A stretch of DNA of 64,000 nucleotides, from NCBI GenBank assembly GCA_010909165.1, contig MU008161.1, forward strand, positions 930,001 to 994,000, written 5' to 3'. Both the position numbers and the translations under genes were made by a program. Of this stretch, positions 26,401 to 56,612 are shown piece after piece (positions within the stretch are counted from its first letter, which is position 1; each line of letters opens with the position of its first letter). The notes under the pieces are model-generated. The model worked only from the letters and a program-made list of their open reading frames with translations, searched no databases and was not told where the DNA came from. This stretch comes from Anthoceros angustus (taxonomy: Eukaryota > Plantae > Anthocerotophyta).

Positions 26401-27408
26401 TGCCCCTCTGAAGGGCGTGAAGGAAAACTAGCAGATTGTCACCAAGGTGGTCCACCTTGGTGAGCATGTTCCAGTGGACGATAATCTTCGCCATTGTCCG
26501 TATCCGTCAGTCCAATAGGTCCGACATGAGCCACCCGTTAGAGGACCGCTGCGTCCCCGGCCTCAGGAGTGCCACCTTCGCGGCCTCCACCTTCCCTTTC
26601 ATCTTTAAGGGCTCTGGCACTACCCCGGGGCCCTACCTCTTCCGCTGGGCGATCGTAGACCGCCTTAAGGACCTCCACGGTCCATCTCCTCGGGTCCTCC
26701 CGCAAGCTCTTAGAGCGGACGGACTTGGTGGCCGCCGCCAACATCTTCCGGGTGTATTCCCGGATCAACGCCACGCTGTCGAAGGTCCACACTACTTGAA
26801 AGATGTCCAGGTGCCACTCCTGCACCAGCTCCTCCGCCTCCGCCAGCCAGGGGCCGAAATCTGGGTAGCGCCTCGTGACGATGTTCTTCTCCACCAAGCG
26901 CCAGGGCTCCCAGACCTTTGCCGCCTTCTTGGGTCCCATCCTTGCGCTCTGGTTGGTCCACTGCTGAGGGGTGGTGGGCAAGGATGTCCCGCTAAGTTCC
27001 ACAGCAATGGGCGCGCAGTTCGAAGGCGATGGCCGCTCAGAGGTACGCTTGGGCGTCGGAAGAGAAAGCGCCAGAGAGCGGGATGTCTGAGTGCGAGTGA
27101 CCGCGAAAACTGCCGGGAAGTCGGTCAAGAGAATGGCCTTCTCTCAGCGTCGGAGCCTCGGGAGTAATTGAAGCGCAGGAAGACGTCCTTTCGCTACCAA
27201 TAAGCGCAGTCACATCGTACTCTAGCCTTCACGCCGCCTTCTTGGCGCATGTCCTTGGTCGGTTACCGCCCATAACGGCCGACAACCCATGATCCTGGTC
27301 CCTCGCATGCCCATCCTCCTCTCAGCACCGTACACGTGGCCCCCTTGCCTATTGCGCTCCACCCCTTTTCCGAAGTTACTTTTCCTGGCGGACTTATTGC
27401 GTTCTACT

Positions 27409-27496
27409 CCGGAGTTTGGTCTGGAGTGGCCTACTTCGGAGTTTGGTCCGGAGTGGCCCACTCCGGAGTTTGGTCCGGAGTGGCCCACTCCGGAGC
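27409..27496. repeat. 27-bp tandem repeat x3
   Basis: Unit ccggagtttggtccggagtggcccact, three copies. Confidence 0.9.
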
Positions 27497-27959: not shown

Positions 27960-28560
27960 TTCATGTCCTAGGAGGGTGGAGCAGGGCGAGGAACACCGCC
28001 TTGGCGAGGCTGCTTTGGGCGGCGCGAGGCGGTGCTCGGGGCGACCGGCGGGCGGCGACAGGGCAGGCGGAGGCGAGTCGCGCAGGCGGGCGGCAGTGCA
28101 AGCGGCGAGCACATCGAGCGGCGGCGGCGAGCACATCGAGCGGCGGCGGCTGCGGTCAGGCGGGCGGCAGGCAGCGGGCAGGCGGGCGGGCGAGCCCGGC
28201 CCGCTACTGACGGAAGTTGGGGCGGGGCAGCGGCGAGCAGGCGGATCGGGTTGGGGCGAAGTTCTCTGGCAGGCAGGCGGGCAGGCGGGGCAGTCGGGGC
28301 AAACACGAGGCTGGGCAGGCGGGCTTGATCGGCGGGGCGGAGGTGGGCGGCGGGCGGGCGGGCGGCGGCTGAGCTGCGGTCAGGCGGGCGGGCGGGCGGG
28401 GTGGGTCAAGGAAGGCGGGCGGGCGGGCGGGCGGGCGGCGGCGGGCGGGCGGCGGCGGGCAGGCGGGCGGGCGGGCGGGCGGGCGTGGCGTGGTGTGGCG
28501 AGGTGAGGCGGTCAGGCGGGCAGGCGGGCAGGCGGGCAGGCGGGAGGAGGCACCGCAGTG
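27960..28560. repeat. GC-rich low-complexity (GGGC/GGCA)n tract, G-quadruplex-prone
   Basis: Runs such as ggcgggcgggcgggcggcg and gcgggcaggcgggcagg. Confidence 0.85.
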
Positions 28561-30177
28561 TCGACCCTCCCCATCCACCACACCAAGCACCTATTAACCT
28601 CGTCCCCATTTCTTGTTGCCCATGGTGATGCCGAATTGTTTGATGCTCCTTTTCTTGCAAATGGCTGACATCCACACGGCTGCCTGGTGCCACTACAAGT
28701 AGTTTTGCAGGCATATTGCGGTTGTGGGCGGGATGGCAGGCACTAGCCCACCCTCTCCTCCTCACATGCCGCAAGCCCCGCAGCCTGCAGCCACAGCGTG
28801 TGCGGGCCAGCTGTGGAGGTGGGTTCCACGCTCTCCTCCAAGCTCACCCGATCCTAATATGTGGAGTGCGTTGTTTTACAGGTCTTATGACCCGAAGAAG
28901 CCAATGGATCCTCTGTCCTACGAGGAGCTTGATGCGCTGTTGCAACATGCGGAGGACCACAACGAACACGATAATTTTTGAAGGGGGTTAATAATCTCGA
29001 AGGGGGTTTTCCGCAAATAATCTCGAAGGGGTTTTGATGGGCCCTAAAAGCGTTTGAAGGCATTGCGCGACTCGAAAAAAGGTGTCACCGGTAAAGTTAC
29101 TACTTTCCATCCGGCAATGTTTGTGTCGAATGGTGGTATGACTCGAACCTAGGGAATGATGCAAAGTAGGAGCGGTGAGGAAGGCCGTTCTGCGGGCGGG
29201 GCAGTAAACTCGATTTTGGGATGGAAATGTGGTTTTGTTATGACACCACAAAAGCCACGGACGGTATTTCCTAACACGAAACATCGACGGACTTACAACA
29301 TTAACTCGGGACCCGGGAAAAAGCAGATTTGATTTCTCATCCCGAGTTCAATCCATCGTCATCACTTGGTCCGACTTCTCCTCCATTGTCATCACTATCT
29401 TGACACTTTCACTCGCGGGTTGTATGAAGCCACGCAACTCATGAGCTTATCCCTTATCGCTTTTTGTCCACCGTGACATGACAGATGTTTCCGCATGCTC
29501 AACACAAACCCATAATACAGGATGACTTTCATCTACAAATACCTCGTATGTTTTTAGGTAATGGATCTTATTCCCTTTTTCCTCGGCATTGGACGGATGG
29601 GTTACCACTCGGCGGACTATGTTCTGCACATATCTCCTTCATACGCATCTGTGCTCGGTCCGATACTAGTGGATAAGAAAGTGAGGTCGTGGTGCGTTTA
29701 GCTTCACGTCAATGACCTCCCAATCCGAATGGCTGTATGCGTGTCCGTATTGCACGCGAAACATCCTCTCGGTTCCGTTATGTCCCCATTCATCCGTGCC
29801 ATTTCCACGTTGCCTTCCCGCATTTTGATATGCCCCAAATACATATCACGCGTGGAGGTCCCTCAATAATGCCTCATCTAGCAAAGCTTCATCCGCACTT
29901 GAAGTGGTCAGTCAGTATGATCCACTTCTGCGTGAAAACCACTTCCAAGGACGTGTAGCACTAGCCCAATGTTATTCTCCACAATGATAGCAATCTCCTT
30001 CCGGTCCACCCAAAAGGCTTCCCACCACTTATACTCTTCATCCTATGGATGCAAATCTTTTAACCCTTCACGCAAATGGGCCACACCTTCCATCGGTGAT
30101 AGGATACCGCTGCCCTTCTTGTCCCCCTAGCTTCACCCGCATGCACCGTAGGATGGTGGGAGGGAGCGCGCGCCGAC

Positions 30178-30510
30178 CGGCCGCCTCCCCTAGCACTCAT
30201 GGCTGGCCGGCCGCCGCCTCCCCTAGCACACCGCCATGGGCCGGCCGGCGCCTCTAGCACACCGCCATGGGCGCCGCCGGCGCCCAACACGCCCGCCGCA
30301 CGCCGGCCGCCGGCGCCTCCCCTAGCACACCGCCCATGGCGCCGGCGCCTCCCCTAGCACACCGCCCATGGCGCCGGCCGCCTCCCCTAGCACACCGCCC
30401 ATGGGCGCCGCCGGCGCCTCCCCTAACACACCATGGGCGCCGGCCGCCCCCACACGCCCATGGCCGGCGCCTCCCCTAGCACCCTGCCCCACCCATGGGC
30501 CGGCGCCCCT
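30178..30510. repeat. GC-rich minisatellite, ~33-bp unit, about 8-10 degenerate copies
   Basis: Recurrent ccggcgcctcccctagcacaccgcccatgg. Confidence 0.85.
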
Positions 30511-33169
30511 CCTCCTAGGCTGTCTTCAAGAAAATATATTTAGCGCCTCAAGAGTTGCAACTTGGGATTGTTGGTCAAGTGTTTGGGAAATAAGTGTAGT
30601 AATGAATAGGTTGCGTGTTCAAACCCGTATCTTCCTAACAACTCAATTTTGTTGATTTTAAGGATGCTTGCATGGGCGCATGGGCAACTAACTTTGTTCA
30701 TTTTAAGGACGCTAGCATTGCCTTAAAGCCCAAGTGGTTGCATTGAGTGCCGAAGGTTGAAGACCACATTGGCGACCTTTTGGATGAGGGTCGGACCCTA
30801 GATCTTTGTGTGGATCGACCGTCGACTGAGCCCAAGAATGATACTATTGAAGGCAGCAAGCAATGGAGGAGAACGACAACTTCGAGGCGGAGGATATGGA
30901 CCGCCTCGAATATGGCGGTGGTACTTGACTCGATTTGGCGCAAGGCATGGATGAGTCGCCGCCGCACTCTTGAATGACTATTGTCGATCGATGACCACTT
31001 CCTCCTTAGTTGTTTGTTGCAATGTTCTCACGACCATTGAAATAAGACTCCGCTAGTACAAGATTGTTTTCATTGTGTTCCACCACTTGAAAGTAAAAGT
31101 TTTCGGTTGTAATAAACATATGAAAATGGCAGCCCTCTATGCATTCTACTAAAACGCAACGGGCCCACACCCTACTGTGCTCCAGTTCTCGGGTGTAGAC
31201 TTGAAAGTGCATCTTTTATCAAAGGTATGACCTCAGAAAGGGTGTGTGCATTATCAAAGTAGGGCACATATCTTTGTTCTAGGAAAGGTGTTCTTCGTGA
31301 CAAGGGGTCTTGTCTCGGCGAAGGTCGATATATCCCCCTTCAAAATTATCGTGTTAACGACCTCATCCGCCACATAGAGAACTACCCTCGGACTTGAGTT
31401 CTTTTGAGGGCGATAATTCATAGTATTTGGTGGACTGGACTTCATCTTTGCGAGAGTGCCTTCCAGGCTGAGCGCACTATTTCATGCATACTCATTTTGA
31501 TGGATGGCTATTAACAAGGTCTCCTTAGAGTGGTGGCTCACTGGTCACTAGTTGGAAGGGTGTACACGGGTCGAAAGGTATACAAAAGCCACCCAAAACC
31601 ATGTTTTCTGATTTCATTAAAAAAACCCCTAAACCTAGGAGCAAATCATAGAGGAATCTGTTTTCCCGTGTTGTATGTCCTCATCTCATATTAGTTTGGC
31701 TAACCAGGGTACATTACCTATAAACGCAGATTTGAAAATCGAGGCAACTTTGTATGGACAACAAAAATACAAACGCGCAATGGAAAATCCATATGTGTTG
31801 AGTCGGTGTCCACCGTCATGGTCACCCCTCTACATTAGTGGGGAGGGTCGTGGTGGCACCGGACGTTCTGTGCATAAACCTTGCATCTCCTGCCCAATGT
31901 CGGCGCAGGAGTGGAGGAAGATTTCGGACTGCCTTCCGCTCATGTCTGTACCCCCGCGAGCCGCGACCCCCGTCTGCGAATCGTTTGGAAGTGGCTTGCC
32001 ACTGCCTCGGAATATTTGCATGCGATGGAGACCTCACCTCCGACGGTGACTAAACGAGAATTCCACATGGGCGATGGAAATTGGAAGTTGACGCACTGGT
32101 GGCAATCACAACATGGGCGGGTTCCTTTCAATCACGCTGGAGTGATCCGCACCTTCATTGCTTGGTCCTTAAGGAATTTGGTTGAGGCGGGGAGGCGGTG
32201 CAAACTCGTGACCTTTGTTGCAGCGTGTTGATCAACACACGGATTCCACTCGGGGTTGGAGGCGGTGTGAATGGTGTGGAGGGCAAAGGAGCACGACATG
32301 TCGGTGTACTTCTTGGTGGTCAAGGATAAAATTGGAGAAAGTCATATTGCTACATGTGTGTAGGCGGTGTTAGTGCACTATGTGAAAGCGATTGAACATC
32401 GTGTGTTTGATTGGATTGTCACATGACATCCATTGTCATCTTCATACACCATTTTATCTCGTGGGTTTACAACATACATAGTCTTCCCTAGCGAGGAGAT
32501 TAGGAAACGATTTGGCGATTGTATTGATCGCTGCATGCATGCGAATGGGCGCGCCGCGCTTCTTTGAAATCGGTCCGTTGTTTACGAAATCCATACCTTG
32601 CACGGTTGTGCGACGCGCCCATGATCTCGCTCATCAAATACCCGGCGGCAATCAGCGAACACATTCTCCACCACTCCCATGCTTCCTAGCTTGCGTGCTC
32701 CACCAGCACCGTGTTCGTTGTCTAGAGTGCCTCCGGGGACCTTGCCGCTGATGTGTTTGTTGTGTTCATAGCACTTTGCTTGCATGCGTTCTACCAGTGC
32801 GAGATACCACCATCCGGTGCTTAAGACCCACGGTTCCTCCTACGAATCCTCGAAACAAACACGTAGCCTATCCACGTACGACACACCTCGATCGTGAAGC
32901 AAAGTTTTCCAATCCTACATCCCCACCATCGGGCCAAGCGGAGGGTGCTCTTCGCCTCCTTCACTTCTTGCTCCGCATCCCCAAGGACCATTGAGTTGTC
33001 GCTGCATGCTTCACCACTTGCCATATGACCCTTGGTCTCGGGCTTCCTCGTTGGTCTCGCTTCACGACACATATGAACCCGGGCACCACCATGTTGTTCA
33101 CCATGGGCTCCTTATTGAACGTCTTTCCGCCTCCATAGCCTCCTCGCCCACCTCCTCCTCTTCCGGCCA

Positions 33170-33800
33170 GTGTCCATGGAATTGATTCGAAGGTCCATGA
33201 ATTGGCACACGGATCCACATCAGCGAAATGACATTACGGCATAAGCGAGCAATGCTATCATACCCGACCCCGATCCTGCGCACCGTCCAAAGACCCAATC
33301 TCCCTCTCATCATTGAATCAACCTCTTCAAGAGTCTTAGGGGCTTGATGGAAACAACCCGATCATCCGCGGTGTAACACAATTTTAGTTCCTTTGCTCGT
33401 TAAAAACACAGTTGTCACTCCACCGCCAAGTTGCGTCGGTTCTCGAGCACAAGCGGTTGAGGCACACAATCCTTATCCAAGCTCCTGCGCAAGTGAAAAG
33501 TCCCACACATCGGCTGTCCTCGACAATGTCACATTGGTTTTATGCCGGTAACATGTCGTAAAGCACCCGCGCTTCCATCGGACTTCTCACCATAGATGTG
33601 TCATCCGAGAATGGAAGACCACAATACGAAATACAGGATGTGGTGATGCCTTTGAACGCATGATGACCCCTTCAAACTACGCCTTGGTAAATCTTGTGTC
33701 ATACTCTCGTGATTGGGGATCTAGATCCAAGCCTGGGAGGTCTAACAACAACAAAGCATACGGTCGGGGCTCTACAAACCGGGCCATGTTCACTATGTTC
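33170..33800 (-). pseudogene. Beta-class N6-adenine/N4-cytosine DNA methyltransferase domain (frameshifted as assembled)
   Basis: Catalytic motif IV-like ALLLLDLP-G (33734-33742). Then (H)QKPLRLLKRLIQ (33313-33349; HQ needs a frameshift), EGDWV(LD)xCAGSGSGMIA (SAM motif I, ~33255-33305) and RNVISL(D)VDP. The order IV then X/I defines the beta class. Confidence 0.8.
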
Positions 33801-34799
33801 CCACATATCCCGACCTTGGGTTTTTCGGCTTGGAGTCGTTCACGATTGTCATCACTTATCCTCGGTGTGGTCGATTTCAAGGCACGTTGACTCCTCCATC
33901 GCTTCCAAGCTCGCCTTGAATATGTGCTCCTTGAAGTTCTCGGTAGGGCACCCCACTCAAGGCAAGTGTTGGCACGCACATGAAAGACACATCCCCACCG
34001 GTCAAATGCAAGCGGCGTTCTCGTTCGATATGCGGTGTGAATGCCTCCACTTTCCATGACTTATAAGGACAAGAAGCGGCCTGAGAAACTACGATTTGGG
34101 TATAGCTAAGTGTTCATCGAGGGACCCGGTTTTTGAAGTGGAAGTTACTAATTTGATTCACCATGCATGTCGGGATATCGTTCTGAACCTCTTCAAATGT
34201 CTCACAGTGCAAATGCTTGGCAGTCACATGGATGAGGTTGAGTTTTTGGCCTTGTCCACCCACACGAACATTTGTTTCAATGTCAATTCTCGGCCGGGAC
34301 TTTCATGCATCTTGTCTTCAAGTTGTTGTTCCAGCATTCGATGCCACGAAACACTTCCATACCCTCACTGGTATACTAAGCTCCTTTGTGTCAATGACCA
34401 AGTTTGCTCTAACCGCGGCTGTTGTCTTCCTTGAATTCCTGCGGGCCTTCGACTGTTTGGCTGTGAGAGCCCGAGCTGCTTCCACCTGCTCAGGCAACTG
34501 TTTCGTCTCCCACTTCTCAAAGATTTCATCCACGTACTTCCACACCTCATCATCAACCTTCGCAACACAATAATCCAGTGTCCGGTTGTCCACGAGGCGG
34601 TGATAACTGACCTTAGGTCCATGCTTGGCTGCATCCCACTTAGGAACCACCTTGACGGCATATATCTCCAACTTCGTCTAAGTCACACTTGACCCATCGC
34701 TAGGCCTTCATCTCGATTCGATGTACCTCACACGGTCGATGAAAGTAAAAGTCTTCACGGCATCCGCAATGGTGTTGTGATCGTGGCAACTAACCTCAT

Positions 34800-35100
34800 C
34801 TCCTCATTTGTGAGGCCAGAACATATGCATCCATCCACTGTACTCTTGAACCAATGGATACAAGTCGGCTAGTCTAGATCGCTGGAAGGAATGATTCCTC
34901 CCAATACATAAAATTTGTACACCCCGATCCACCTTATCCATGTCAAAGAAGTTCTTGTTGGGACAGGCCGGGTCTACAATGACAATCATGGGCAGCACAC
35001 CACCCGTGGAATGCTTCATCTTTTGCATCAAAGCCTCCACCCAAGCGAGTCTAGCTTACGTACCTTGCCCGACATAGTTCTTCCGAGGTCTACAACGTGA
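34800..35100 (-). pseudogene. ParB/sulfiredoxin-like domain, same reading direction, upstream of the MTase domain
   Basis: KVRKLDSLG-EALMQKMKHSTGGVLPMIVIVDP...VQILCIGRNHSFQ resembles the ParB-N pattern (R.LD...V..L...I...G.L.PI.V...Y.II.G.HR). Confidence 0.6.
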
Positions 35101-36319
35101 TGGACAGCTTTAACGTGGACTCCCATACTCTCTTTTCCGCAATTGCCTCCTCGCAACATCTCTCCCCTCGGCCCTCGTCGTAGCTTCGTCATCCGTGGCT
35201 CTGACGCATCCTTGGCCTTCTCTATGAACTTTGGGAGCTCTTGGCCCCTCTCGGACATCATGTGCCATTCGTTGCTTGCGCGCACTTGTTGACCTTCCCA
35301 CCCGCCGTCCTCCACGCGATTGGGCCTCTCAATCCCTTCCCTCTTTTCCTCGATTGTCTACATATGGCGGCTTGAACCCTTCGCGTGCCATGGGACCAAA
35401 TCCCGGTCCGTTGCATCCACCTCGCCCCATCGTCATCTTCCACGTCTTCGTCGTCGGGGCGGATATGATCCACGGCCTGGGCCATCGGCGAATGCCATCG
35501 CCAAACCCCTCATTGTCCTGGTCCCCACCCGCATCCTCATCTTCGTCTTCGTCGGCTAGAGAGGTTAGGGTGACATCATCGCTGACCATGGGCTAGGAAA
35601 AACCAGCGGCTAGTGTGGGCGGACTGCTTGGACTCGAAGCCGGACGTCCGTGGCTGCAACCCCTCTTACCGGGCTTTCATTTCGCAAACTAGTTCAAACG
35701 TGTCCCGCGAATTATATTTTGTGCCACCACCTTTTGTTGCGGTTTCACTTGGCGCAGATCATGCATATCGATGGCGGTTGCCAGCGACACACTGCGGCGG
35801 ATGGATTTACTGATCCCATTAGGGCACTAGGAGTTGCCATTTGATTTCCACTCGGCGGATGCCATGCTAGGGGCCTTCTCGCAGCAGATGCCCTTTCGAT
35901 GTAAGCAATGCATCATCCGCACACCTTCTAAACATTCGGTGCAAAGCCTTGTGGAAGACACGATGTCCATCACCGTGTCGCAATGCCTCCAAAAGTTCTT
36001 GCCTTTTCCTCTGGTTGTACGCCACAATGTCAAAGTTCTTCACCGCAACCTTGTATACTCTAATCCATTGCGGGTCGACGAAGAGGCTCCTTGTGCTTGA
36101 GCGGATCGGCAATATAGCGTACACACTCATCCTTCATGGTGCGTGAAAACAAGCGCTCCGCACATTTCTTTTGGCTGGTGTGGTTCGCATCATCCTCCAT
36201 CGACACATACAAGAAGAGCAAGTCTTGATTGGGTCGCTGTTGCACTGTCCAACTTCTCTTTGTAATGTCAAATGGCGAGATCATCTTGTACATCTGGTGG
36301 ATTAAGTCAATATCGGACC

Positions 36320-36569
36320 TGATGAAATAGGTCTAGCTTAGGGCACTATTCATTAGGGCCTCATTACTTAAACATTAATTTAGAGCTAGGGCTTTAGGTA
36401 GTTAGTTGTTACAACAACTTATAGTTGCAACAACTTATGGTTGCAACTTCTTATGGTTACAACAACATATTGTTGTAACCACCCCCACCTATTTAAAGGC
36501 TTGTACTTTACTCATTAATCAATTCATTCCATTGTTTCTCTTCTATCTAAGAGCTATTGATTCTCATCA
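36320..36569 (+). repeat. 5' LTR of copia 1 (250 bp)
   Basis: About 5-6 differences from 44160-44408 by eye. Confidence 0.97.
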
Positions 36570-39500
36570 TGGTATCGAGCATTTAGCTCTTTGTGCTTGA
36601 GCACCTCGCTTCCTTATGCTCTAGGCAATTTACTCTCCAATGCTTTTGCGTTTGTAGTACTTCAAATGAAGATAATGCGTGGAGATTTCGCCTTAGCGAA
36701 TCATCCGGTGACCAGCGCAATGATGCACACATTGTGCATCAATTTCTTATGCTCTTCATGGATTCCTTTAATCCAAGCAGAGAATTTAGGAGGAAGATCA
36801 AGGCTTCAAAGAAGAAGAAACAACATCAAATCAAATCTTCTTACATTCGGAGGAGTTTGACCTCAATTCTCCTCGATTGATGTTTTAGAGGCACAAGTAT
36901 GTTGTCTCATTGAAGCCCTTTTGTCTAAGTCGAGATAGAGTACAAGATATCATTTATGCTCGTAAAGCTCTCCTTTCTACATTTAGCCTTTATCAATATA
37001 GTGCTATAGAGTCGCCATCTCTAAGTACATAAAAATAAGGCTAGTATCTTCGCTCCTAATCCGGATCATCAGCAATCTCTTGATTCCATTAGAGCGTAAC
37101 TTAGAATAAATCACTCGCTATCAATGAGAAATTGACTTACAATACACAACAAATCAATATTATCTCGATAGACTTGTTGACCGAGACCTTTCACAAGGTC
37201 TCTTCTCACTTGATTGTAAGTCTGCAGATTCGATTATGATGCGAAATTCATAATTTGAAGAAATGTTGTACTGCTGCGCCTCTTTCCGCAAAACAATGCA
37301 AGAAGGCGTGTCAACCACGGCATAACCTGCATCATTAAAATTACTTGCAATGGTGGGGTCGGACGATCTCGACGTGGATATTGATGACTGCAGAGCAAAA
37401 TTTTGGCGCCCAAAAGACCAAATGGCTTGAAGAACAACAATCTATATGGCGAGATGAATGGGAGCAATTTAAAAGGGAAGAAAAGGAGAAAGCTAAAAGC
37501 GTAATGAATCCAAGCCTCAAGTGATTCAAGGTGACAACTTTAAAGACAAAGATAGATTCAACGGCAGTACGATGTGGCAACACCGTGCCCAAGGTGTCTC
37601 CGCGCGACTTATGGAATATTGTCAGCAGTGCGGAAGAATGTTCCACTTGGGACTCCGACTTATAGATGAATGGGAAGCCAAAGATCGGAGGCACGTTTTA
37701 ATGAACGGACTTACAAGCGATGGTACTCCAAGTTGCGCAAAACACCAGTAGAGATGTGGGAGAAGTTAGCTCGACTTTATGCCTCCAAAGATGGAATGAG
37801 CTTATTGACGCCACACGTCACTTATATACTATAAGGATGAAGGAGGCGATTCCTTACAACAACACTTGAGCAACTTCCGTATTGCAAAGAATAATTTCAA
37901 TGCATCCTCAAGAAAACTTACGGAGAAACAAACTTTTATTGCTCTCCTCGCTTGCCGCCCTCCTATAGGCCCTTTGTGACAACGCAAAATGCGGTCCTTA
38001 GAGCTGCACAAAAGCAGAAATTAACGGCTCCACAACGGATATCGGTAAGTGAATTAATTGGAGCACTTATTGAGGAGGACGCAAGCCGTCAAATGAAAAT
38101 CCCGATCAGCCCGCCCAGTAATGTACACGGGGCCGGCGAAGGGGAGGGCGTGGCCGAGGCGCGGAAACTTCCCTAGGCGACTCACTCAAAATTTTCAAGG
38201 ACCATCCACTTCTTCATTTAAACCTTCAAAAGGCATGAAGAAGGCTGGAGTTACCGCAATTGGTGCAAGATGACCAACCATATGGAGAAGGATTGTTGGA
38301 AGAAGAAAAATGGTGAGCCAAAGAAGGAGGTCACCAGAGCACATGTTGCCGTTAAGAAGAAGCCCTCCACGGCAACTCCATCACTTCGCTTGGCAAGTTC
38401 CAAGCCATCAAACCAAAATTGGTATTTAGACAGTGGTGCAACATCTCATATATGTCACGACATTAACTCTTTTGAGTCGTATTCGCCATCAAAAGGACAA
38501 CAAACAGTGCTCCTAGGCGACGACCATAACCTCACCATATTTGGTGTAGGTTCCGTGGCATTAAAGTGCTCCACCGGGCAGGTGCTTACTCTCTCCCATG
38601 TCCTTTATGTACCCTCCATGTGCAAGAATCTAGTGTCAGCCGCTAGTTTATGTCAAGAACATAACATGCAAATTATCCTTGAAGCCGATTTGTGTCTCCT
38701 TTACTATCATACTAATAAGTATCACACAATGCTCGGCACACTAGAAGATGGACTCTATAAACTCTCGGTCAAGTGGGTCCGTTACACCTCATCAATGTAG
38801 CCTCCCATTCCACTCTTCAAGCACCATGCTTTGGCCTCGTTTAGGTCATCCGAATAGCCAAAAGCTTATCCAAATGTCTAAGGAAACTGTATAGAACTCC
38901 TGTATTCCTAAACTTGAACCTCTCCCTGGTGAAGCTTGCGTCATAACCAAACGTCATCAAGCTCCATTCCACAATCCATCCCTCGGAGGGCTAAGGCACC
39001 CTTAGAGTTGGTTCACACGGACATTTGTGGTCCGATATCGCACCTTCATTTAGTGGTTGTAGATATTTTTAACCTTCATCGATGATTATTCGGTTCGTCC
39101 TCACCTACATCCTCCGCCATAAGAGTCGCCTTTTCTTTCTTCAAAGAATATATGATGTGGGCGAGAGACTTCTGCGAAGCTTAAAACTCTTCGCTCCGAT
39201 AATGGAGGAGAGTTCACTTCAATGAATTTGCTGAATTTTGCCTTGAAGGTATAGCGCAACAACTTAGTGTGGTACACACCTCAAAAAATGGCGTGGCGAG
39301 AAAACAAAATTTACGCCTCCAGAGATCACGCTGTTTGCTCACCCAAGCTACATTATCTAAAAGTTATTGGGTGAAGCTATATTGACAACATATCTCCTTA
39401 ATAGACCGCCACTTCCGTCAAGGCATGACTCCATATGAAGCTTTTCGAGAAAACCTTCATTGATCATTTACGAATCTTGGATCCCCATGTGTTCATCCCC

Positions 39501-42500
39501 AAAGTACAACGCAAGAAGTCTGGATCCCAAGGCAAATATACCTTTATTGGCTACACAGAAGGCATTAAGGGTTACAAGTTATTTGACCCATCTACCCGAA
39601 AGCTCATTTATGCCAGGAGCGTGACCTTTCATGAATCTCATATTCTTTCTCCTATTATGGGGGCATCTGCTCCCATTACTCCTGATGCCCCTTCCTCTGC
39701 GCATCCGGAGCCTTCCACTTTGATGACGATGATTTTGTCATCATACATTCACTCCCTCCGCAGCAAGCTCCTATGGTTGAACCTCTGTTGCAGGAGGAGG
39801 AGGAGGAGTTAGAATATATTCCAAGACGACCAACTACACCAGATCCTGATTTAGAAGAACCTCAACATTTAACTGATGATGAAATCGACTATGATGTTGA
39901 AATTCGTGAGGAGGATCGTATTCCTTTCGAGGATGAACTCGACGACGAGCCAGAACAAGAGCCTGCGTTACCTGCACAGGAACCAGCTCAACAAGTGGTC
40001 GACATTGAAGAACACATTCAACAACCTGCACCAAGGTACAATCTTAGGACTAGACCCGCTGTTGCAGGACCTGCTGGATGGAAGGAACCACCTTTGGGAT
40101 ATCTTGTCACTTCTGATGACCCCATTTCTCCTCTCACACCTTATTATCAAGCTGTTTACAAAGCCACAGTTGATCCAGAGGAACCGCTAACCTTGAAACA
40201 AGCATTTTCCTCTCCGAGAAAGACACATGGAAGGTAGCGAGATTGATACAACTCTTTAGTAGAAAACTCCACATGGGAATTAGTTAAACCACCCAAAGGG
40301 AGAAAAATAGTGGGAAGTAAATGGGTATTTAAAATCAAACGTAAGGGTGATGGTTCTATTGAGCGATATAAGGCAAGGCTGGTAGCCAGAGGGTTTACCC
40401 AGATACCGGGTTTAGATTACATACCCTGGGCTACCTATGCACCAGTAGCAAAGTTTGCCTCCCTCAGAATTATAATAGCCTTGTCCGCTCAACATGACTT
40501 ACATCTTCACATGATGGACGTCAAAACTGCCTATCTGCATGGCCGAATCCAAGAAGAAATATACATGAGACAACCTGAAGGCTATGAAGTCAAAGGTAAA
40601 GAAGACCATGTATGCAGGCTCATTAAAGGCATTTATGGCCTTAAGCAATCGAGCAAGGAATGGAATAATGATATACATGACAAGCTTACAAAATATGGTT
40701 TTGTTCAAAGCAAAGCAGATGCTAGCATGTATATCCCCAAGACTAAAGCATACACAATTTACCTCTTACTATATGTGGATGACTTATTTTTAGCTTCATC
40801 TTCACTCTCCCATCTAGTGAAATTAAAGCATGGTTGAGAAGTCATTATGAAAATGACGGACACAGGAGACCTTAGTTATGCCCTTGGCGTTAACATTATA
40901 AGAAATAGAGGTAATAAATCCATTTCCTTGGTTCAAACAAAATATATAAAAGAAAGCTTAAAGAAGTTTGGACTAGAAGATGCTAAGCCGGCACACCATT
41001 TCCAAGTGGCACAAGGCTTCTGAGATATGAGCCCTAAAAGCAGATCTGAGAGAAAGCGAAATGTCAGCAGTACCATACGGACATCTTTGTTGGCACCTTA
41101 ATATATTTAAGTAACTTCACAAGACCCGATATATCTTTTGAAGTTAGTGCGATCTCACAATTTTTGAGAATCACGGAACACAACATTGGCAATGTGTCAA
41201 GAGAATATTCAGGTATTTAAAAGGGACTATGCACAGGATTGATGTATAAACATGTTCCCGGCATATCTAAGTTACAATTAAACTTATCTTGATGCCGACT
41301 ATCTTGGAGATCCCGATAGCCGCAAATCAGATCCGGCTATGCATTCGCTAGGAGGTGCACCCATTTCATGGTCAAGTAAGAAACAACCAACCATTGCTTT
41401 GTCAGACAGTCGAGTATAGGGTCCTCACCTCGTCTCCAAGGATATAGTGAGTAGGTTAGCATTGAGTGAGTTGAATTATCCCCAAGATGGACCTACACCT
41501 CTCTACGGTGACGTGGGGCTATTGCCTTAGCTAGGAACCCTTTTCCACTCGAACTAAACATATAGCGATCAGTATCATTACATACGGAAATGTTAGAAAA
41601 TAAAACAATAGATATCAATTATATACCAACTCAAAACAACCCAGCTGACCTTTTAACCAAGTCATTAGGAAGAGATTTGCATTTAAAACACATGAAAATG
41701 TTAGGAGTACAAGAGGTTAAGCCACTAGCTAGTGGGTATTTTCCAATTTTACAATCCACAAAGTTTATCTAGCATGTTTATTTCCTCTTCTATTTCCAAG
41801 TAATCATCATGTACTCCTTCTCTTCTCTCTCTCTAATGCCCAAAAGGACCTACAAAACACTCCATGGGTTACGGGAAGAAAAATGGTGTTGAGTTAGTCA
41901 TTCGAGTTAGGTCACTTACTATACAAGTGCTTGGTGTGTCCTTCGTACTCTTCACATGGATATGCACCTAACCACATCATTTTTATCCCTTTTCTCACAT
42001 ACATATTCCATGGGGACTTCGTGGTCGTCCTTTCCTCCGGAAGCACCATGTATGTTGCTGCATAGGTTTCAATGGCAAATAGGAGTTTGGTATTTTCCTT
42101 TTTGTTTTGTTATAGGTTGTAGAGGTAGGGCAAACCTCACATGGCTTGTGCCTACCCTTTCTCCACATCGCAAAATAGATGTAGATTAGCTTATCATTAG
42201 CATAGGTTACACTAGTTACTAGCCCCTAACTATAGGTTTTACACCTACTCACTTTTCTTTTCCCTAGCCCCTACTTCTCCTATGTCGGCTAGCATATGCT
42301 CTCCACTTGGGCTGCCCTCACACTGACTGGGGCCTCCTCTCTGTTTATGGAGTCCCACTCCTCGACTCTTCTTCTATGTTGAAGTCGTCATACCAGGACA
42401 CTCAGGATACAGCTCCAGGCCCTCGGTAGTTGGATTATCTACATCAACAATCATTAGTATTTTTATGCAATCAAATTATTTATTGCAATTTATTTTGCAT

Positions 42501-42659
42501 TATTGGCTTACCAGCCCCTCGACTTCTTTGATGACAACATCGGTTTTCCGGTGCTTGTACCACCAAGACGTCATCTCTCCATCGGCCATTTCTCCACTGT
42601 TTTACCTCGGCACATGCTTGCGAATTCATAAGAGAAATTAGGATCTTCCATGTCCTTTC

Positions 42660-43620
42660 CTATATTACGGCCGGGGCCCGACATGGGATCTCTTCACCCG
42701 TGCAAGTGCATCTCTATACCACAAGATGCACAGGCGGCTTCCGCTCAATATATCCTTTCTCCACGGCAAGTTTTCTTCTTCTTCTTGCTATCGGTTTGCT
42801 CTTTTCATTTTCTTATGGCCTCGTCCTTTGGAGCATGGGGGGCACGGCCTTCCTCCGCACGAGGACCTGCCACCACATTAGGTATATTAGTCGTATTCAA
42901 ACATGCAAGAGATATGAAAAATGCACAATTGAACAATGGAAAAATATGAGGAAAATGTGCAATGGCAAATGGACATGGAATCTCACCCGTTATGAGTCGC
43001 GTCATATTATCTGCAACAATATGCATACACAAGACAATCATGCGTGCTGGAGCAACATCAGCGGGTTCACATCAAGGAGCGCAAATCCATCTGCATTTTT
43101 ATGCAGGAGGGAGCGCACCACAAAACCCGCGTCCCGAGGCCGCCAATTACGGCCGGGGCCCGACATCGGATCTCTTCACCCGTGCAAGTGCTTCTCTATA
43201 CCACAAGATGCACAGGCGGCTTCCTCAATTTTCCTTTCTCCACGCGCAAGTTTTCTTCTTCTTCTTGCTATGGTTTGCTCTTTTCATTTTCTTATGGCCT
43301 CGTCCTTTGGAGCATGGGGGCCGGCCTCCTCCACACGAGGACCGCCACCACATTAGGTATATTAGTCGGTATTCAAACATGCAAGAGATATGAAAATGCA
43401 CAATTGAACAATGGAAAAATATGAGGAAAATGTGCAATGGCAAATGGACATGGAATCTCACCCGTTGCGTCATATTATAATGCAACAATACGAGACACAT
43501 CACAGCAACAATCATGCGTGTCACAGGAGCAACGCATGAGTTCACATCAGCGCAAATCCATACGCATTTTTATGCGGAGGGAGCGCACCACAAAACCCGC
43601 AGCGTCCGGCGAGCGGCCAA
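42660..43620. repeat. ~480-bp tandem duplication in the 3' non-coding region of copia 1
   Basis: attacggccggggcccgacat...cacaaaacccgc begins at ~42664 and again at ~43146. Confidence 0.9.
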
Positions 43621-44159
43621 TTCACGAGTGCGGCGCGGGCGCGGGCGTAGCGGCGCCCGGGCGCGCGGCGCGGCGCAGCGGCGGCAGCGCGCGATGCGCG
43701 GCGGCAGCGGCGGCGCGCGATGCGCGGCGGCAGCTCGATGTGCGCGAGGCGCGTGCGAGGAGGAGGAGGCCACAATCGGCTATCCTCCACACCCCGCCTT
43801 CGGGCGGCTGCGGAAATTATGGCCGTCACGTGCCTCGTCGGTGGCCGGGGGCGGCCGATTTAGGATAAGCCGTGTGGGCTTATCCATTTAAAGTTTTTGG
43901 GCCTTTTTTCGGGCCCCTGATTTATTTATTTATTTTAGGCCTCTCTTTTAAGCCTATTTGGAGCTATTATTTGTCAACCTTATTCTGGTGAATATTTTGG
44001 TGGACATATTAAGTTTTCTATTTCAGGCTTACTTATTCATCAAGCGACTTAAGTTAGCATTTTCTTAGGCTTATAACTTTTGATTAAGTGGGAGTCTATC
44101 TATGATTTAGACATCATTTTGAAGCTAGAATTCACCCCTACATTCATAGTGAGTGGGAG

Positions 44160-44408
44160 TGATGAAATAGGTCTAGCTTAAGGCACTATTCATTAGGGCC
44201 TCATTACTTAAACATTAATTTAGAGCTAGGGCTTTAGGTAGTTAGTTGTTACAACAACTTATAGTTGCAACAACTTATGGTTGCAACTACTTATGGTTAC
44301 AACAACATATTGTTGTAACCACCCAGCCTATTTAAAGGCTTGTACTTTACTCATTAATTAATTCATTCCATTGTTTCTCTTCTATCTAAGAGCTATTGAT
44401 TCTCATCA
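44160..44408 (+). repeat. 3' LTR of copia 1 (249 bp)
   Basis: TGATGAAATAG...TTCTCATCA followed by GGACC. Confidence 0.97.
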
Positions 44409-46299
44409 GGACCGCTTGTAAGGACTCTGGAAAGATGCCTTGGTCGGCGGGGATGCTCTTGTGGAAAGACCGCATCGGTGGCGATTTGAGTTGTCCTTGG
44501 AGTCAGGTGAGTGCAGGCTCGTCGCCTCGTTCAAGGCACATGAGTCTGTTCCTTAGTCGCGCCTTTTTTTCTCCAGGCGTCCTGCGATTTGTTGGAGTCA
44601 TTCTTCGCTTGAGCCCTTGGAGCCATTACATGCAACTATGAAAGAAGTGAGATCACGAAGTGTTTAGATTGTTAAAAGGCGATACTGCATGAGCGCAACT
44701 TCTCGAAACAGGGGCGATCGTGAGCGGGAGTTGGAGTTGATGCTCACAGACGACTAGCCCACTGCTGCACCTCGAAACAGCAATTGCAGCTGGCGATGAG
44801 GAGGTCGGCGGTGTCACGATATCTGCATGCCCGGCCGATGGACAAAGTGCGGTGTGTGTGAGAACGACCCGTTTTCTCCGGTCGGCAATCTCTTGCTTTT
44901 CCCGCCCACACATAAGCTAGATGGAAATACACATCTTCCCGCCAAAGCGAGAATGAATCTATACCATCCAGAAAGGGGAAGGTGGGGTCGTTGTGCCGTC
45001 ATGAAGGAAGACACAGGGCAAGGCAGGCTCTGTAATCAAGCAACTCCTTAAATGCTTTGTCGCCGGCGACCGTGTTTTGCCATTGTCCCGGCTAATGTGG
45101 CAAATGCAAATTTGAGCATATTCTAAGGTATATGCTAGTTATGCCACGGCTAAAATTGTGTTCAGCGGTGGCATAACGTTGGGCACCTAGAGTGATTCAG
45201 CATCCACCGACTAGCGGTGTACCACCGCGTTTCCTACCGCAAAGTGGGCACCTCGACTTCATTAGCATTTAGTGCGAAGGCTTATTTCGCACAGCCCGTA
45301 TCGAGTCTTGCGCATCCACTTCTCATCCACCTTGCGCATCCCTCCTCCTCCCTGACGCCACGCCCCTCGTGTGAGCAATGGCCAATGACAGCGGCGTGTT
45401 CGATTTTGCAAATTTCGGGCGGCGGGTCGGATGCATGTCATTACCGAACCGGGTGGCCATGAGTCTGACGACTCAATTGTTGATCTCGGCGGGCGGATGC
45501 CGCACAACCGCGTCGTAGTTTTAGAGGATGATTCACGAGGCTATGGCGGCGTCGGCGGGCATAGTCCTTGAAGAGACACGGTGGCAGACTTCACAACGGT
45601 GGAAGCGATGGCGATGTGCGTGTTCCGAGATATGGAGAGCGGAGGATATGGTTGCCGATGGGGACCTTTTCATGCGATCCGGTGCGATGCGGGCGGAGAG
45701 GATCGCACAAGAGGAGCTCGTGCGACGTTTAACCGGATGTCCGGTGCTCGGCCGACCGCGCGGCGAGGCCGTGTGCCACCACGAGGCGGCACGGCACCAT
45801 CCATCCGGACTTCTTGGATCACCGATGGCGGCGCATCGCGAAGATGTACCTCGGCGCATTTGGGCGAAACCCGGATAACACCGGACGCCCTGCCGGACAA
45901 GGTCGGCCCCTCCGGCGGATCGTGGGCGGGTCCAGAATACTATCGAGAATGTGCTACACCGTGGGAACCGGCAAGACTACGATGTGGAGTGTTGCGAGTC
46001 TCCGGACTTTGGTGAGAAGATCCACATTGTTGATTTTGGGCTTGGCTTGGAAACAATATCGCACGCGGGTGATGGCGGAGTTGCAATCTTGGGAGTCGTC
46101 AAGAGCTAATGTGGTCCGTGGTCCCGGATCTTTGTTTGGTGATTGTGATGCCATCCAGCTTGGAGTTGCACGAGATGATGCCTCGCGCACATCCAAAGGT
46201 GAGGATCTGCGTGCAACAGCCGCGCGTTAGCGTAAAGTACCTCCGGCCGAGCTAGAATGGATTTGGTCTTAGAGAAGCATTGTTCAGGCCAAGTTGTGC

Positions 46300-48560
46300 G
46301 CCGATTTAAAGCGGCATTGTTGTGACAAAAATGTTTAGGCGTGTTGGCCATTCAAATTGAAGGTGATTCGTAGCATTCTTCCGCATGACAAAAGGAGGCG
46401 AGGCGCATTTGCAAGACCATCTGGATCGATCGAAGACGAAGGAGTTGTTGCCCATAGTATGGATAAACCGGATTCCACATGGGAAGAAAGCAGTGTGTGT
46501 GAGGGCTTTACGGGTTTTCGCATTGGGTCACTAAGATACAAGAATCGCAAACCAGGTAGTGAAAAATGTTAGATGGACCGTAGGCTACGGTCAAAGCAGC
46601 CAACGCCATATGGATTACACGTCATGTGGATGGACGTTTTCTTCAAAGGTCATGCGGAAAGGCGAATCGGAAGTCTTCAACTTGCGACTCGTACGAAGAG
46701 GAGATCTTCATTGAGTATGCCAGCGGCGGAAATTGTGCTCCACGTTTATTCTGACTACTTTTGCAAGCTTTGGATGAAGTATTTCCATTAAAATACTGCA
46801 ATACCGGTTTTCGATCAGATGCGATGACCTAAAGAGGAAAATAAAAGGCGGTCGGATCACGTACAAGGTGAGATGGCGGTCCTTATTCCAGTGTCACGGA
46901 TGTCCCGAACTTTGGCGCAACCCCATGGCCTCATACCCTTTTCTTGCGAATGAAGGCGGGGCTTGAAACAAACCGTGTGCACATTCGACGCCCTTATTGT
47001 TGCGTGTGCGGACAAGAATGTGGCTCGAGACTCCACAGAGAACAACAACGAAGGCGAAAATGGCGCGGCACAAGTGCTTGGGCGGCTAAGTTCATTGGTA
47101 TTGCCATAGATGGTATGGACCAAAAAAGCAGTTGCCCCATTACAGATTGCCAAAGACGGTTGATTCCGGAGCCCTTGTCGGGCTTCACGTTCTAGGTGTC
47201 TGGTGTTCAACTACTTGGTGCGCACAGTGTATTTGAGTTTCCGAATGTGAGAAATGATCCGAAGATGTAGCCGTGATTCAAGATGTTATCAATACAGGAG
47301 GCCGCTCCCCTATTCTATACTTGCGGATGGACAACACACTGCTCAAAACAAGAATCGGAGGTATTGGCATATCATCCATGCTTGTGGCGAAGGTATCTTC
47401 AAAAATCAAGGTGGGGTTTCTTCTTGTTGGCCATACCCACGATCGATTGACCAAATGTTTTCGAGGTTCTCGGTTGTGCTAGGGTTGAAGGATGCTTTCA
47501 CATTGCGAAAATGATAGGGTTCTTTGGAGCGGGCGTACACCCCATCACCGCAGATTCACATATCAAGGAGGTGCGGACTTCAAGACCTATCTATGGCCGA
47601 AGGGGATCTGCCGCAACGTATGACTTGCATAATCACGATTTTCAACACCGGTTCAAAATAACAAGGAGAAGTCGCTATCGGAGAGGGCGTGGCGTGCTAA
47701 GATGCAAGGAGTTTTCAAGTTCGATCACCGTCACCGGAGGGTGGTGTGCGCTATTACGTTCGGTGCCACCACGGGTGATTGTGGCGCTCCATTGTTGCCG
47801 TTGGTCCCATCACATGCCCAAGGTAAAGGAAAGGGACATGCAAAGCGGAAGGATGCCCCGATGTCCGTGTCGATGACGATAGTCTCAAGCGATGGCGGTA
47901 GTGGTAGTGTAGTGGCGGAGTCCATGAAGTAAAAGCGGGCCTAGAACGCACCAGGCGACATATGAATGTGGAGCAACTAGCATGGTGGGATACGTTGGAT
48001 GAGCAGTAGCAATAGCCGAGAGACTAGCGGTGGCATTCCATTCCGTTGGAGAGAATGGTCTTGGTACACTCGCGATGAAGAAAACGAGGTACCACAGACC
48101 CTCCAGACTCAACTTTGGTTGATCCCGCAATGGCAGACGGATTTTTGGACATGGTGGAGGTGTACAGGGCACATCAGTGCGGAGGGAGGGCAAGGCGAGG
48201 CTCGGTCGAGGTTGTGTGAAGGAGATTGAGGAGGGAATGATGGTTGCTGTCCAAGCTGGGGATGATCCAGGCAGACCATTCTGGCTCGCAAAAGTGGTGG
48301 AGGTGGACCATGATCGGGTCCCTTTCATGATAGTTCATTGGTGGCGGACGAGAGAACAATGATGCATTCGAGGGAAGGTACATGGAGGAGTTTGTGATCT
48401 GAGCGCCCACCGTGTCGAGGGAAAAAGTGCGGCGATCAAAGAATGGAGGCGAGGGCGTCGGGAGAAGCATTTGCAAAGCCTCAACTTCCGAGACAAATGT
48501 GCTGGCCTATGATTTGTGACAAGGAACAAGGCGTTGCGAGGGCGACAATGAAGCGATAAA
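46300..48560 (+). pseudogene. Sola-type DDD/E transposase (probably Sola2-like), frameshifted, with a C-terminal Tudor/BAH-like module
   Basis: YFCKLWMKYF...RCDDLKRKIK (46750-46850); IAIDGMDQK (47109-47126); LYLRMDN + AQNKNRRY (47315-47365); VGFLLVGHTHD + IDQMFSRFS (47410-47470); GMMVAVQAGDDPGRPFWLAKVVEVD...VHWW (48230-48350). The 5' start may lie near 45500. Confidence 0.75.
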
Positions 48561-49299
48561 GACCAAAGTCTTTGAGTTGCGTCGAGCCGGTGATGAACCG
48601 GCGAGACTTCCGCCGGTGACACGAATGTCATGCCCGAAGACATGATTGACTCGGAAGACCTCGACAATGTGGAATCAACGGATGAGTCCACGCAGGCGTG
48701 GTGGTGGACCGGTGGATGGTGGACTGGAGAGGAGCCGGACGGTAGGCAACCTAATATTGTCAACTTTCCGGTTCCTTGTACCAGACCGTTATGTCCCCTC
48801 GGGCTTGAATGCGTGGATTGTTTTCGTCTTTTCGTGGAAAGGTTTAACTTGCCATCGGCATCATCTCTTTGTAGGAAGTTGACGGTGTGATAATGTCCGG
48901 AGCATGTAAACGGCGACTATGTCGAAACCGGATCCCAATGTGGTGCTCTAATTTTCTAACAATGTTCGGTGGTTTTGTCCGATTGAGGCGGCGAGGCCAA
49001 TGGTGATCATGCGTCATCTATGTTCGACCTTGCGGTGTGGCGAAGTGTTCCCGGAGGATGGTCACACCACAGGATGTCCGTGGCAAGGTATGTATGCCGC
49101 AGCAAGTGCGCCAATGTTTGTTTTCGGTTCTAGTTAGGGACCGCCTAATGACTATGGGGTGGAACGGACGGGTCGATCTCGGTGGCGGTGGCAGTTGACG
49201 GACGCACAAAAAGCGGCGTACGACGGGCTCAAGCAGCGTCTTCCTCCTGCCACGAGGTTGTCTTCCACCTCCTTTGTGGTTTGTGCACGCGCTCATCCC

Positions 49300-49440
49300 C
49301 TCCTCGGCGGAGGCCGTCCTCACGCCATGCTCCTCCACCTCCTTCCGACCTCGGCTGTATGGGTTTTGCCCTTTTGTCGCCCCTCCTCGGCGGAGCCGTC
49401 CTCACGCCATGCTCCTCCACCTCCTTCCGACCTCTGTATG
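49300..49440. repeat. ~83-bp direct repeat x2 (plus partial similarity)
   Basis: cctcctcggcggag(g)ccgtcctcacgccatgctcctccacctccttccgacctc at ~49300 and ~49383. Confidence 0.85.
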
Positions 49441-51505: not shown

Positions 51506-51528
51506 TCCCCTCTGTCCTCTTTGGTATG
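51506..51528 (-). repeat. Right inverted repeat of the giant element
   Basis: TCCCCTCTGTCCTCTTTGGTATG is the reverse complement of 27666-27688. Confidence 0.85.
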
Positions 51529-56400: not shown

Positions 56401-56612
56401 GATGGCTGATGTTCGGTTTCCGTCCCATCCAGACTTCAAAAGGTGTTTTATCTGCAAGAGTTGAAGTTCCGCAACGATTTTGGACATAGCAGACACAAAC
56501 GGCAGCCTCTGCCCACAAGTAGGTGGGGAGGCCAGCAGTGTGAAGAGAGCTGCGAACATCGTCCATGATGGAGCGATGGCAGCGCTCTGCTTTGCCCAAT
56601 TGTTGGTGCGAA
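53443..56612. repeat. ~1.05-kb internal segment (integrase end to RT start) in three tandem copies
   Basis: tgcattgtgcttcttcctc...ccaaggtccatg recurs at ~53497, ~54542 and ~55590. Confidence 0.92.

Follow-up and report, generated by a model that had tools for sequence, protein, structure and literature searches.

The 64,000-nt stretch of the Anthoceros angustus contig MU008161.1 analysed here (positions 930,001 to 994,000 of assembly GCA_010909165.1; hereafter the window) is plant nuclear DNA. At 33096-36326 on its minus strand lies the remnant of a gene whose better-preserved relatives join a putative ParB-like domain to a beta-class DNA methyltransferase fold. This remnant is very probably a dead copy of a gene carried as cargo by a cut-and-paste DNA transposon with two genes, residing in the nuclear genome of a land plant; the partner gene would be a transposase of the DUF7869 type. 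We show below the homology, the gene structure, the pseudogene state, the transposase partner, the fold and the replacement of the catalytic motif. The copy in the window is a badly decayed pseudogene, a genomic fossil and no working N6-methyladenine (6mA) enzyme. An earlier note, made from the sequence, had described a ParB-like domain fused to an amino-methyltransferase with a D-type catalytic motif and had proposed a 6mA-type enzyme; it missed the transposon context of the gene.

The family was recognised through a 127-aa piece of the window (33680-34060, minus strand). When 1.84 billion proteins were searched exhaustively with phmmer, this piece matched two of them, P0121 and P0122 (E 1e-4 and 6e-4), which are 52-55% identical to it over the motif IV region, and word-index searches added P0123, P0124, P0126 and P0127. 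All six relatives trace back to contigs (L004-L006 and L010-L012) that belong to a single public run. The strongest single match was that of an intact 488-aa upstream open reading frame (ORF) on contig L011, of which residues 228-478 aligned to the window with a tblastn E of 2e-52 and 45% identity over 255 residues. The methyltransferase parts of P0121, P0122, P0123, P0126 and the L011 ORFs matched at E 1e-11 to 1e-15 with 41-54% identity, and the middle domain was 58-70% identical to that of L005 and L006 (tblastx; tblastn against L006, E 8e-40). The window is colinear with L005, L006 and L011 across the whole gene.

The relatives also connect the family to prokaryotic and phage methyltransferases. 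PF01555 (N6_N4_Mtase) was matched by P0122 (E 4.4e-13), P0127 (7e-10) and P0123 (6e-7), and P0122 matches DNA-methyltransferase families of the PHROGs, with PHROG_498 spanning residues 69-312 at 2e-14. For the gene region of the window (30.4-36.3 kb, both strands), neither an initial set of 10 nor a later set of 85 stop-to-stop pieces gave a significant match in Pfam. A profile hidden Markov model (HMM) of 114 phage ParB-methyltransferase fusions gave a sole match in the six-frame translation of the window, a non-significant one (E 0.28) to the motif I segment. That segment aligns to the PF01555-matching part of P0122, and in the plant relatives the same profile recognises motif I only. In the HMM check proposed in the earlier note, relatives reach PF01555, the pieces of the gene region in the window reach no Pfam family, and the intact L011 exon A showed no ParB match. 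The 127-aa window piece found only chance matches in 50,697 phage records (tblastn) and in the PDB (phmmer), and the ESM Atlas returned chance-level neighbours for the methyltransferase piece of the window and for an 83-aa ParB piece. Scanning metagenomes with the middle-domain alignment gave no match; the methyltransferase alignment gave only three bacterial-looking matches to motif I at about 30% identity.

Comparison of the relatives with each other showed low proportions of nonsynonymous differences (pN 0.19-0.37) against saturated synonymous sites (pS 0.62-0.85), a saturation that precludes a proper dN/dS estimate. Purifying selection therefore acted on the protein, its odd catalytic motif included, during the divergence of the family. 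Most of the relatives are broken as well: on L005 (3-908), for example, exon A carries two in-frame stops and a frameshift, although P0123, the ORF of its exon B, is open. The organism behind the run therefore also has mostly decaying copies, from several deeply diverged lineages.

In L005, L006 and L011, a phase-0 GT-AG intron joins two exons in frame. Exon A ends in ..FQL(S/A)F.. and exon B starts with RVRSVGNL in L005 and L006 and with the equivalent KAKDI.. in L011; the donors are GTAAGT, GTGAGT or GTACGT and the acceptors CAG. As predicted for intact relatives, exon A encodes an acidic N-terminus, the putative ParB/Srx-like domain and a middle domain, and exon B the methyltransferase fold. 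The spliced gene models thus support a fusion of the upstream exon and the methyltransferase exon in one gene. This supports the fusion proposed in the earlier note, for which separate ORFs in intact copies had been named as the refuting outcome: the better-preserved copies hold both halves in one predicted spliced gene.

The window retains each part of this gene as a remnant on the minus strand. The acidic and basic low-complexity N-terminal region of exon A (35050-35676) aligns by tblastn in a single frame to residues 8-227 of the L011 exon A, at low identity. It is followed by the remnant of the putative ParB/Srx-like domain (34720-35049), which contains two compensating frameshifts at about 34820-34860 and about 34780, and by the middle domain (34126-34656), the best-preserved part of the copy. 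A 157-nt intron remnant (33969-34125) keeps its GT donor at 34125-34124, and its CAG acceptor is mutated to CAA at 33971-33969. Exon B (33096-33968), delimited by tblastn to the relatives, comprises the beta-class amino-methyltransferase-like domain and a short C-terminal tail. Upstream of the gene, a further segment (36147-36326) that would be a 5' or intergenic part of the element matches residues 76-134 of L011:2528-3172 (tblastn E 8e-9 to 6e-8) and is weakly colinear with L006 2971-3084 (tblastx).

The motifs listed in the earlier note are all present, on the minus strand between 33096 and 35049, where translation and coordinates modulo 3 place them scattered across three reading frames. 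The upstream set described there as ParB/Srx-like was confirmed at 34720-35049, and consists of WVEALMQKMKH (35011-35043), GGVLPMIVIVDP of the GGVLPMIVIV segment (34969-35004), ILCIGRNHSFQ (34882-34914), GLTNEEMRLVAT (34782-34817) and HNTIADAVKTFTFIDRVRYI of the HNTIADA..FTFIDRVRYI segment (34720-34779). In the methyltransferase part, the motif IV remnant LLLLDLPGLDLDP (LLLLDLP-GLDLDP) lies at 33716-33754. The (S/H)P(Y/T)QKP..L..RLI helix and the motif I region for binding S-adenosylmethionine (AdoMet; GDWVFGRCAGSGSG) together occupy 33253-33393. The helix half ends in VVSIKPLRLLKRLIQ (33313-33393) and is parted from the other half, EGDWVFGRCAGSGSGMIA (GRCAGSGSG, 33253-33306), by two TGA stops that follow it directly at 33312 and 33309. 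Next comes LCRNVISLMWIRVP (33203-33244); the strand after motif I is frameshifted and reads RNVISLMWIRVP, at a place where the relatives have RNV[IVL][AS]VD[VI]DP. The bracketed residues of the earlier motif strings, (H)Q, (LD) and (D)VDP, are absent from the DNA of the window copy and are those carried by intact relatives.

With the frames matched to the relatives, we count about 13 stop codons in frame and about 7 frameshifts in the copy. Stops fall at 35595, 35331, 35112, 35058, 34710, 34680, 34320 and 34305 in exon A, the first four in its N-terminal region and the last two in the middle domain, and at 33959, 33679, 33589, 33312 and 33309 in exon B. Beside the two compensating frameshifts in exon A, exon B has five. 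The copy is unable to encode a protein because of these stops and frameshifts. Since the stops are point substitutions and not indels, read correction is unable to restore the gene, and the proposal to rescue it with accurate reads fails on the stops, the frameshifts and the mutated splice acceptor together. No RNA run is listed as holding the stretch, and the contigs of one RNA run from the same sample are absent from it. From a low-coverage public DNA run, 411 short contigs lie on the stretch at 90-100% likeness, but these are only repeat contigs of 80-170 nt, too short for a read-by-read check of the stops. Their high word depth indicates that the sequence is multi-copy in that genome.

A decayed gene for a DUF7869-type transposase (46516-48689, plus strand) lies head-to-head with the methyltransferase gene. 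On L011, a 619-aa DUF7869 ORF (PF25273, E 1.7e-49) is divergent from the cargo gene in the same head-to-head layout. By tblastn, residues 4-173 of this ORF match the window at 47123-47605 (E 3e-19) and residues 344-534 match at 48123-48689 (E 2e-15), and the N-terminal ORF of L006 matches at 46516-46785 (E 1e-3). The window piece 47258-47479 alone reaches PF25273 above the cut-off (E 2.9e-8, 34 bits), and the transposase remnants ..MDN.. and ..LVGHTHD.. are found at 47321-47449 on the plus strand. DUF7869 was not mentioned in the literature we searched.

Between the two genes lies a Ty1/copia long terminal repeat (LTR) retrotransposon (36320-44408, plus strand; RVT_2 E 4e-50, Pol_BBD E 5e-24; repeat families D6 and D16). 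Its LTRs (36320-36569 and 44160-44408) are about 250 bp long, 97-99% identical and have TG..CA ends, and the target-site duplication GGACC flanks it at 36315-36319 and 44409-44413. The conserved segment upstream of the cargo gene stops exactly at the copia insertion point. The insertion and its target-site duplication therefore explain the 8-kb gap between the transposase and cargo genes. The position of a copia element between the two genes of an older DNA transposon also gives the relative age order of the two.

The motif on which the 6mA proposal was built differs from DPPY throughout the family. In a MAFFT alignment with YhdJ, three bacterial enzymes and phage ParB-methyltransferases, the family segment LDLPRGL falls directly under their xDPPYxx; the W.K motif is also aligned, as are SPYQKP with HPTQKP and DGC.GSGS with DPF.GSGT. 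DLPRG is found in every relative that covers motif IV (P0121, P0122, P0123 and L011:5635-5892), in the context LDLPRGL(E/N/S)(L/M)(D/E). Compared with DPPY, the second Pro, as we describe it, is thus replaced by Leu and the Tyr by Arg in all of them. A canonical (D/N/S)-P-P-(Y/F/W) motif, DPPY-like or SPPY, is absent in the window copy and in all relatives covering the site. The window reads DLP-G, the Arg codon being additionally lost. The absence of an aromatic residue, described in the earlier note as a feature of the sequence as assembled, is therefore a family trait and no assembly fault, with Arg at that position, to which the window copy adds the loss of the codon. The AdoMet-binding motif I is intact in the relatives (DGC[SA]G[SA]GS) and reads GRCAGSGSG in the window. 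Amino-methyltransferases use the backbone of the Pro-Pro pair to position the target amino group and the aromatic residue to stack against the flipped base. Judging from the aligned residues, DLPRG casts doubt on canonical catalysis. Given these replacements, 6mA versus N4-methylcytosine (4mC) cannot be read from motif IV; the rule that reads D/N/S at its first position is inapplicable to DLPRG, and the 6mA inference is unfounded.

The order of the motifs is that of the beta class, with DLP(R)G N-terminal to GRCAGSGSG in the window and the same order in P0122 and P0123. An AlphaFold2 (AF2) model of P0123:55-345, built from a 20-row alignment, reached a predicted local distance difference test score (pLDDT) of 72.8 and a predicted template modelling score (pTM) of 0.75, with the motif IV loop poorly modelled (pLDDT <50). 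The best Foldseek match of this model in the PDB was CcrM (1.2e-13), followed by M.BceJIV, M.MboIIA, M1.HpyAVI, M.RsrI, the rotifer N4CMT (4e-11) and M.PvuII. Together with the PF01555 and PHROG matches, these results uphold, at the level of the family, the beta-class N6_N4-type fold and the prokaryotic or phage ancestry that had been proposed.

The identity of the upstream domain is less firmly placed. In the ParB/Srx consensus, a segment like L..SI..G...P(I/V).V comes first, then a beta-strand and, following it, a G-x-(H/R)-R-x-x-A box. The intact exon A of L011 has the pattern WVE.LM.KMK..G.LPMVV ... Y.VLGGNHSWQA ... GL.E.EMR..AT.HN, which we take, from an unscored comparison, to resemble the ParB/Srx N-terminal domain, the consensus Arg being absent. 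By ESM Atlas features, L011:4035-4523 lies closest to unnamed eukaryotic clusters (0.97), then to DUF3723 (0.94) and a ParB_N cluster (0.93), and models near the top match include ParB, DndB and ParB-methylase proteins (template modelling score, TM, 0.46-0.57). The unnamed clusters are from sponge and mollusc (0.97 and 0.95). DUF3723 is an auxiliary gene family of the fungal Starship giant transposons, and its closeness in this language-model space may point to a broader group of domains linked to transposons. The ParB identity proposed in the earlier note has the motif pattern and the language-model neighbours on its side and drew no support from Pfam, the PHROGs, NCBIfam, the PDB, hhalign or AF2/Foldseek; from these comparisons, the label ParB-like is plausible but undemonstrated. 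The middle domain, of about 170 aa, lies between the ParB-like and methyltransferase domains (L006:4647-5285, L005:3-572 and L011:4400-4841) and is the best-conserved part of the cargo protein. Its motifs are WD..KHG (WDAAKHG in the window copy), YHRLVDN.TL.YCVAKV, YHRLVDNKTLEYCVAKV, VWKYVDEIF, LPEQ, IPVRVW and KHLNCE.FEEV, and it had no match in Pfam.

In active elements, the N-terminal half of the protein would bind the DNA of its own element. The protein might then methylate that DNA through its unusual active site, or act as an AdoMet-binding, non-catalytic DNA-binding factor. Either role would serve the transposon, for example by regulating transposition or by evading host silencing.

Several points weigh against the interpretation as transposon cargo and against parts of it. 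A blastn-short comparison of 29500-33300 with 48500-54000 revealed no terminal inverted repeats or element ends, only chance matches of at most 13 nt; decay may have erased the termini. The transposase is assigned to DUF7869 only, and the limits of the element are undefined. Every relative comes from a single public run and most are interrupted too. Bacterial methyltransferases formed part of the AF2 alignment for the methyltransferase domain, so that the model is biased toward their fold. Neither the 488-aa exon A of L011 nor its 163-aa core had a match in Pfam, the PHROGs, NCBIfam or the PDB sequences; hhalign against 21 phage ParB N-termini gave a probability of 0.2%, with a very shallow query profile (Neff 1.4) and hence low sensitivity. 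The AF2 model of exon A reached a pLDDT of 43.8, and at such low confidence Foldseek gave no meaningful match. The function proposed for active elements is pure inference.

In the alternative reading closest to the earlier note, the defects stem from errors of assembly and the gene could still be live, encoding a ParB-fused N6-adenine methyltransferase that would be to 6mA what the SPPY-type enzymes DN4MT1 and N4CMT are to 4mC. The fold and the motif order do match the beta class, and the Asp at the first position of motif IV is kept. However, the number of stops and frameshifts and the mutated acceptor are far above the rate of assembly errors, the partner transposase is equally decayed, neither the listed RNA runs nor the RNA contigs cover the stretch, and the DLPRG of the relatives removes the D/N versus S argument. 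We consider this reading very improbable. Somewhat less improbable, though still unlikely, is a former host gene, domesticated or horizontally acquired, that became a pseudogene here recently and has a transposase nearby by coincidence. The spliceosomal intron and the purifying selection speak for such a gene, but the divergent pairing with DUF7869 recurs in the independent contig L011 and in the window once the copia element is subtracted, and the family is multi-copy and shows deep diversification inside a single run, a pattern to be expected of transposon lineages.

Beta-class DNA methyltransferases and ParB-like nucleases are frequent in the genomes of giant and other viruses. On L006, genes for a protease of the Ulp1-like kind (PF02902, E 5.5e-45) and for a RecQ-like helicase lie 6-10 kb away from the family copy, which would suit the remnant of an integrated viral genome. 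Such an origin nonetheless has only a slim chance: the window showed no hallmark gene of viruses, its genes being of the pentatricopeptide repeat (PPR), stem-loop binding protein (SLBP) and copia kinds, the conserved neighbour in both L011 and the window resembles a transposase gene, the spliceosomal intron is conserved, and the window piece matched nothing in phages or viruses. The lack of Pfam matches for the pieces of the gene region and the E of 0.28 with the phage profile might raise the suspicion that non-coding DNA resembles these short motifs by coincidence. The similarity searches exclude this, given tblastn values down to 2e-52, colinearity over about 2.6 kb with three independent contigs, and an E of 1e-4 against the whole protein library. 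A methyltransferase of a DIRS-type retrotransposon was also considered and dropped, no reverse transcriptase or recombinase being nearby; the DIRS methyltransferase domain is Dam-like, not beta-class.

A further possibility concerns what the family became. The land-plant cargo gene may be repurposed and not degenerate, with a new target or chemistry, or as an AdoMet-dependent ParB-like clamp that marks the DNA of its own transposon. We regard this as possible but rather doubtful; it is suggested because DLPRG is common to deeply diverged lineages, the protein was under purifying selection and the adjacent AdoMet-binding motif is intact.

The interpretation as transposon cargo has close published parallels. 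The 21.5-kb element Sola1-1_Ec32 of Ectocarpus has a gene for a 1104-aa protein with a ParB-like and an N4C/N6A methyltransferase domain on the strand opposite its transposase (Dinatale et al. 2025, PMC12477816, which cites Iyer et al. 2011 and Petroll et al. 2025). Judging by its description, it shares with the window family a cargo gene opposite the transposase and an N-terminal DNA-binding-type domain followed by a prokaryote-type N4C/N6A methyltransferase, and the role proposed for both cargo proteins, to bind and mark the DNA of their own element, is the same. The present case differs in its land-plant host, its DLPRG motif IV, a transposase assigned to DUF7869 only and a dead copy. In a preprint on red algae, a methylase and a ParB-oxygenase are described as separate accessory genes, with inverted-repeat arrays beside the ParB-oxygenase gene. 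Land plants have few N6A methyltransferases, and ParB-linked ones occur in haptophytes, chlorophytes and chytrids (Iyer et al. 2015, PMC4738411). The literature we searched contained no report of a ParB-methyltransferase as transposon cargo in land plants. By these comparisons, the family appears to be a land-plant member of a kind of transposon cargo published from brown, green and red algae, with an unusual DLPRG motif.

Outside transposons, the phage and prophage ParB-methyltransferases (such as the Wolbachia phage WO methylase and that of Streptococcus phage Javan320; PF02195 plus PF01555, about 410 aa, in a ParB-terminase locus) have the same domain order and share the HPTQKP-like and GSGS motif I region. 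They have DPPY and a Pfam-detectable ParB_N, whereas the plant family has DLPRG, a middle domain, an intron and no match to the ParB_N profile. The bacterial enzymes CcrM, M.BceJIV, M.RsrI, M.MboIIA and M1.HpyAVI are the best structural matches (E 1e-13 to 1e-11, TM up to 0.75 by target) and have the same motif order at 14-20% identity. Compared with these N6-adenine enzymes, the plant family has DPPY replaced, SPYQKP for HPTQKP and DGC.GSGS for DPF.GSGT. The rotifer N4CMT (PDB 8s9o and 8s9m) and the Marchantia DN4MT1, the latter described with a TSPPY motif (bioRxiv 10.1101/2021.02.12.428880), are, like the family, prokaryote-derived beta-class folds in eukaryotic nuclear genomes. Those two are host genes with (T)SPPY and demonstrated activity, in contrast to the DLPRG and the apparently transposon-borne setting of the family.

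As a fossil, the locus alone changes little; its value is that of one more dated and structurally informative copy, with its two genes split by a younger copia element, the intron position conserved and motif IV decayed. The larger question lies with the family, namely whether a transposon writes or reads a mark other than 5-methylcytosine on its own DNA in plants through a DLPRG site. If the cargo were indeed repurposed, it would represent an undescribed transposon-encoded self-marking system in land plants. The case also cautions that the first residue of motif IV is unreliable for telling 6mA from 4mC when the rest of the motif is gone.

Other features of the window and contigs complete the description. 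The window contains two intact host genes, for a 958-aa PPR protein (6439-9315) and for a 388-aa protein with an SLBP domain (17739-18905; PF15247, E 2e-32). On L006, a 16-kb contig, the Ulp1-like protease and the RecQ-like helicase fragment lie at 11918-12892 and 15394-15961 and may be further cargo of a larger element. At 2.6-6 kb downstream of the methyltransferase gene, the window has GC-rich tandem arrays (30177-30489, 27406-27495 and 28268-28551): one has a 32-nt unit repeated about 9 times with the palindromes GCCGGC, GGCGCC and CCATGG, and the others comprise about 3 repeats of a 27-nt unit that bears CCACTCCGGAGTGG-type palindromes, and a GGGC microsatellite. By analogy with the red-algal arrays beside ParB-type cargo, these could be binding arrays of the element, or they could be unrelated repeats. 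At 53496-56573, about three tandem copies of a unit of about 1.04 kb (repeat families D2-D5, D8, D11 and D15) overlap a copia-type gag/integrase ORF (56341-57534, minus strand).

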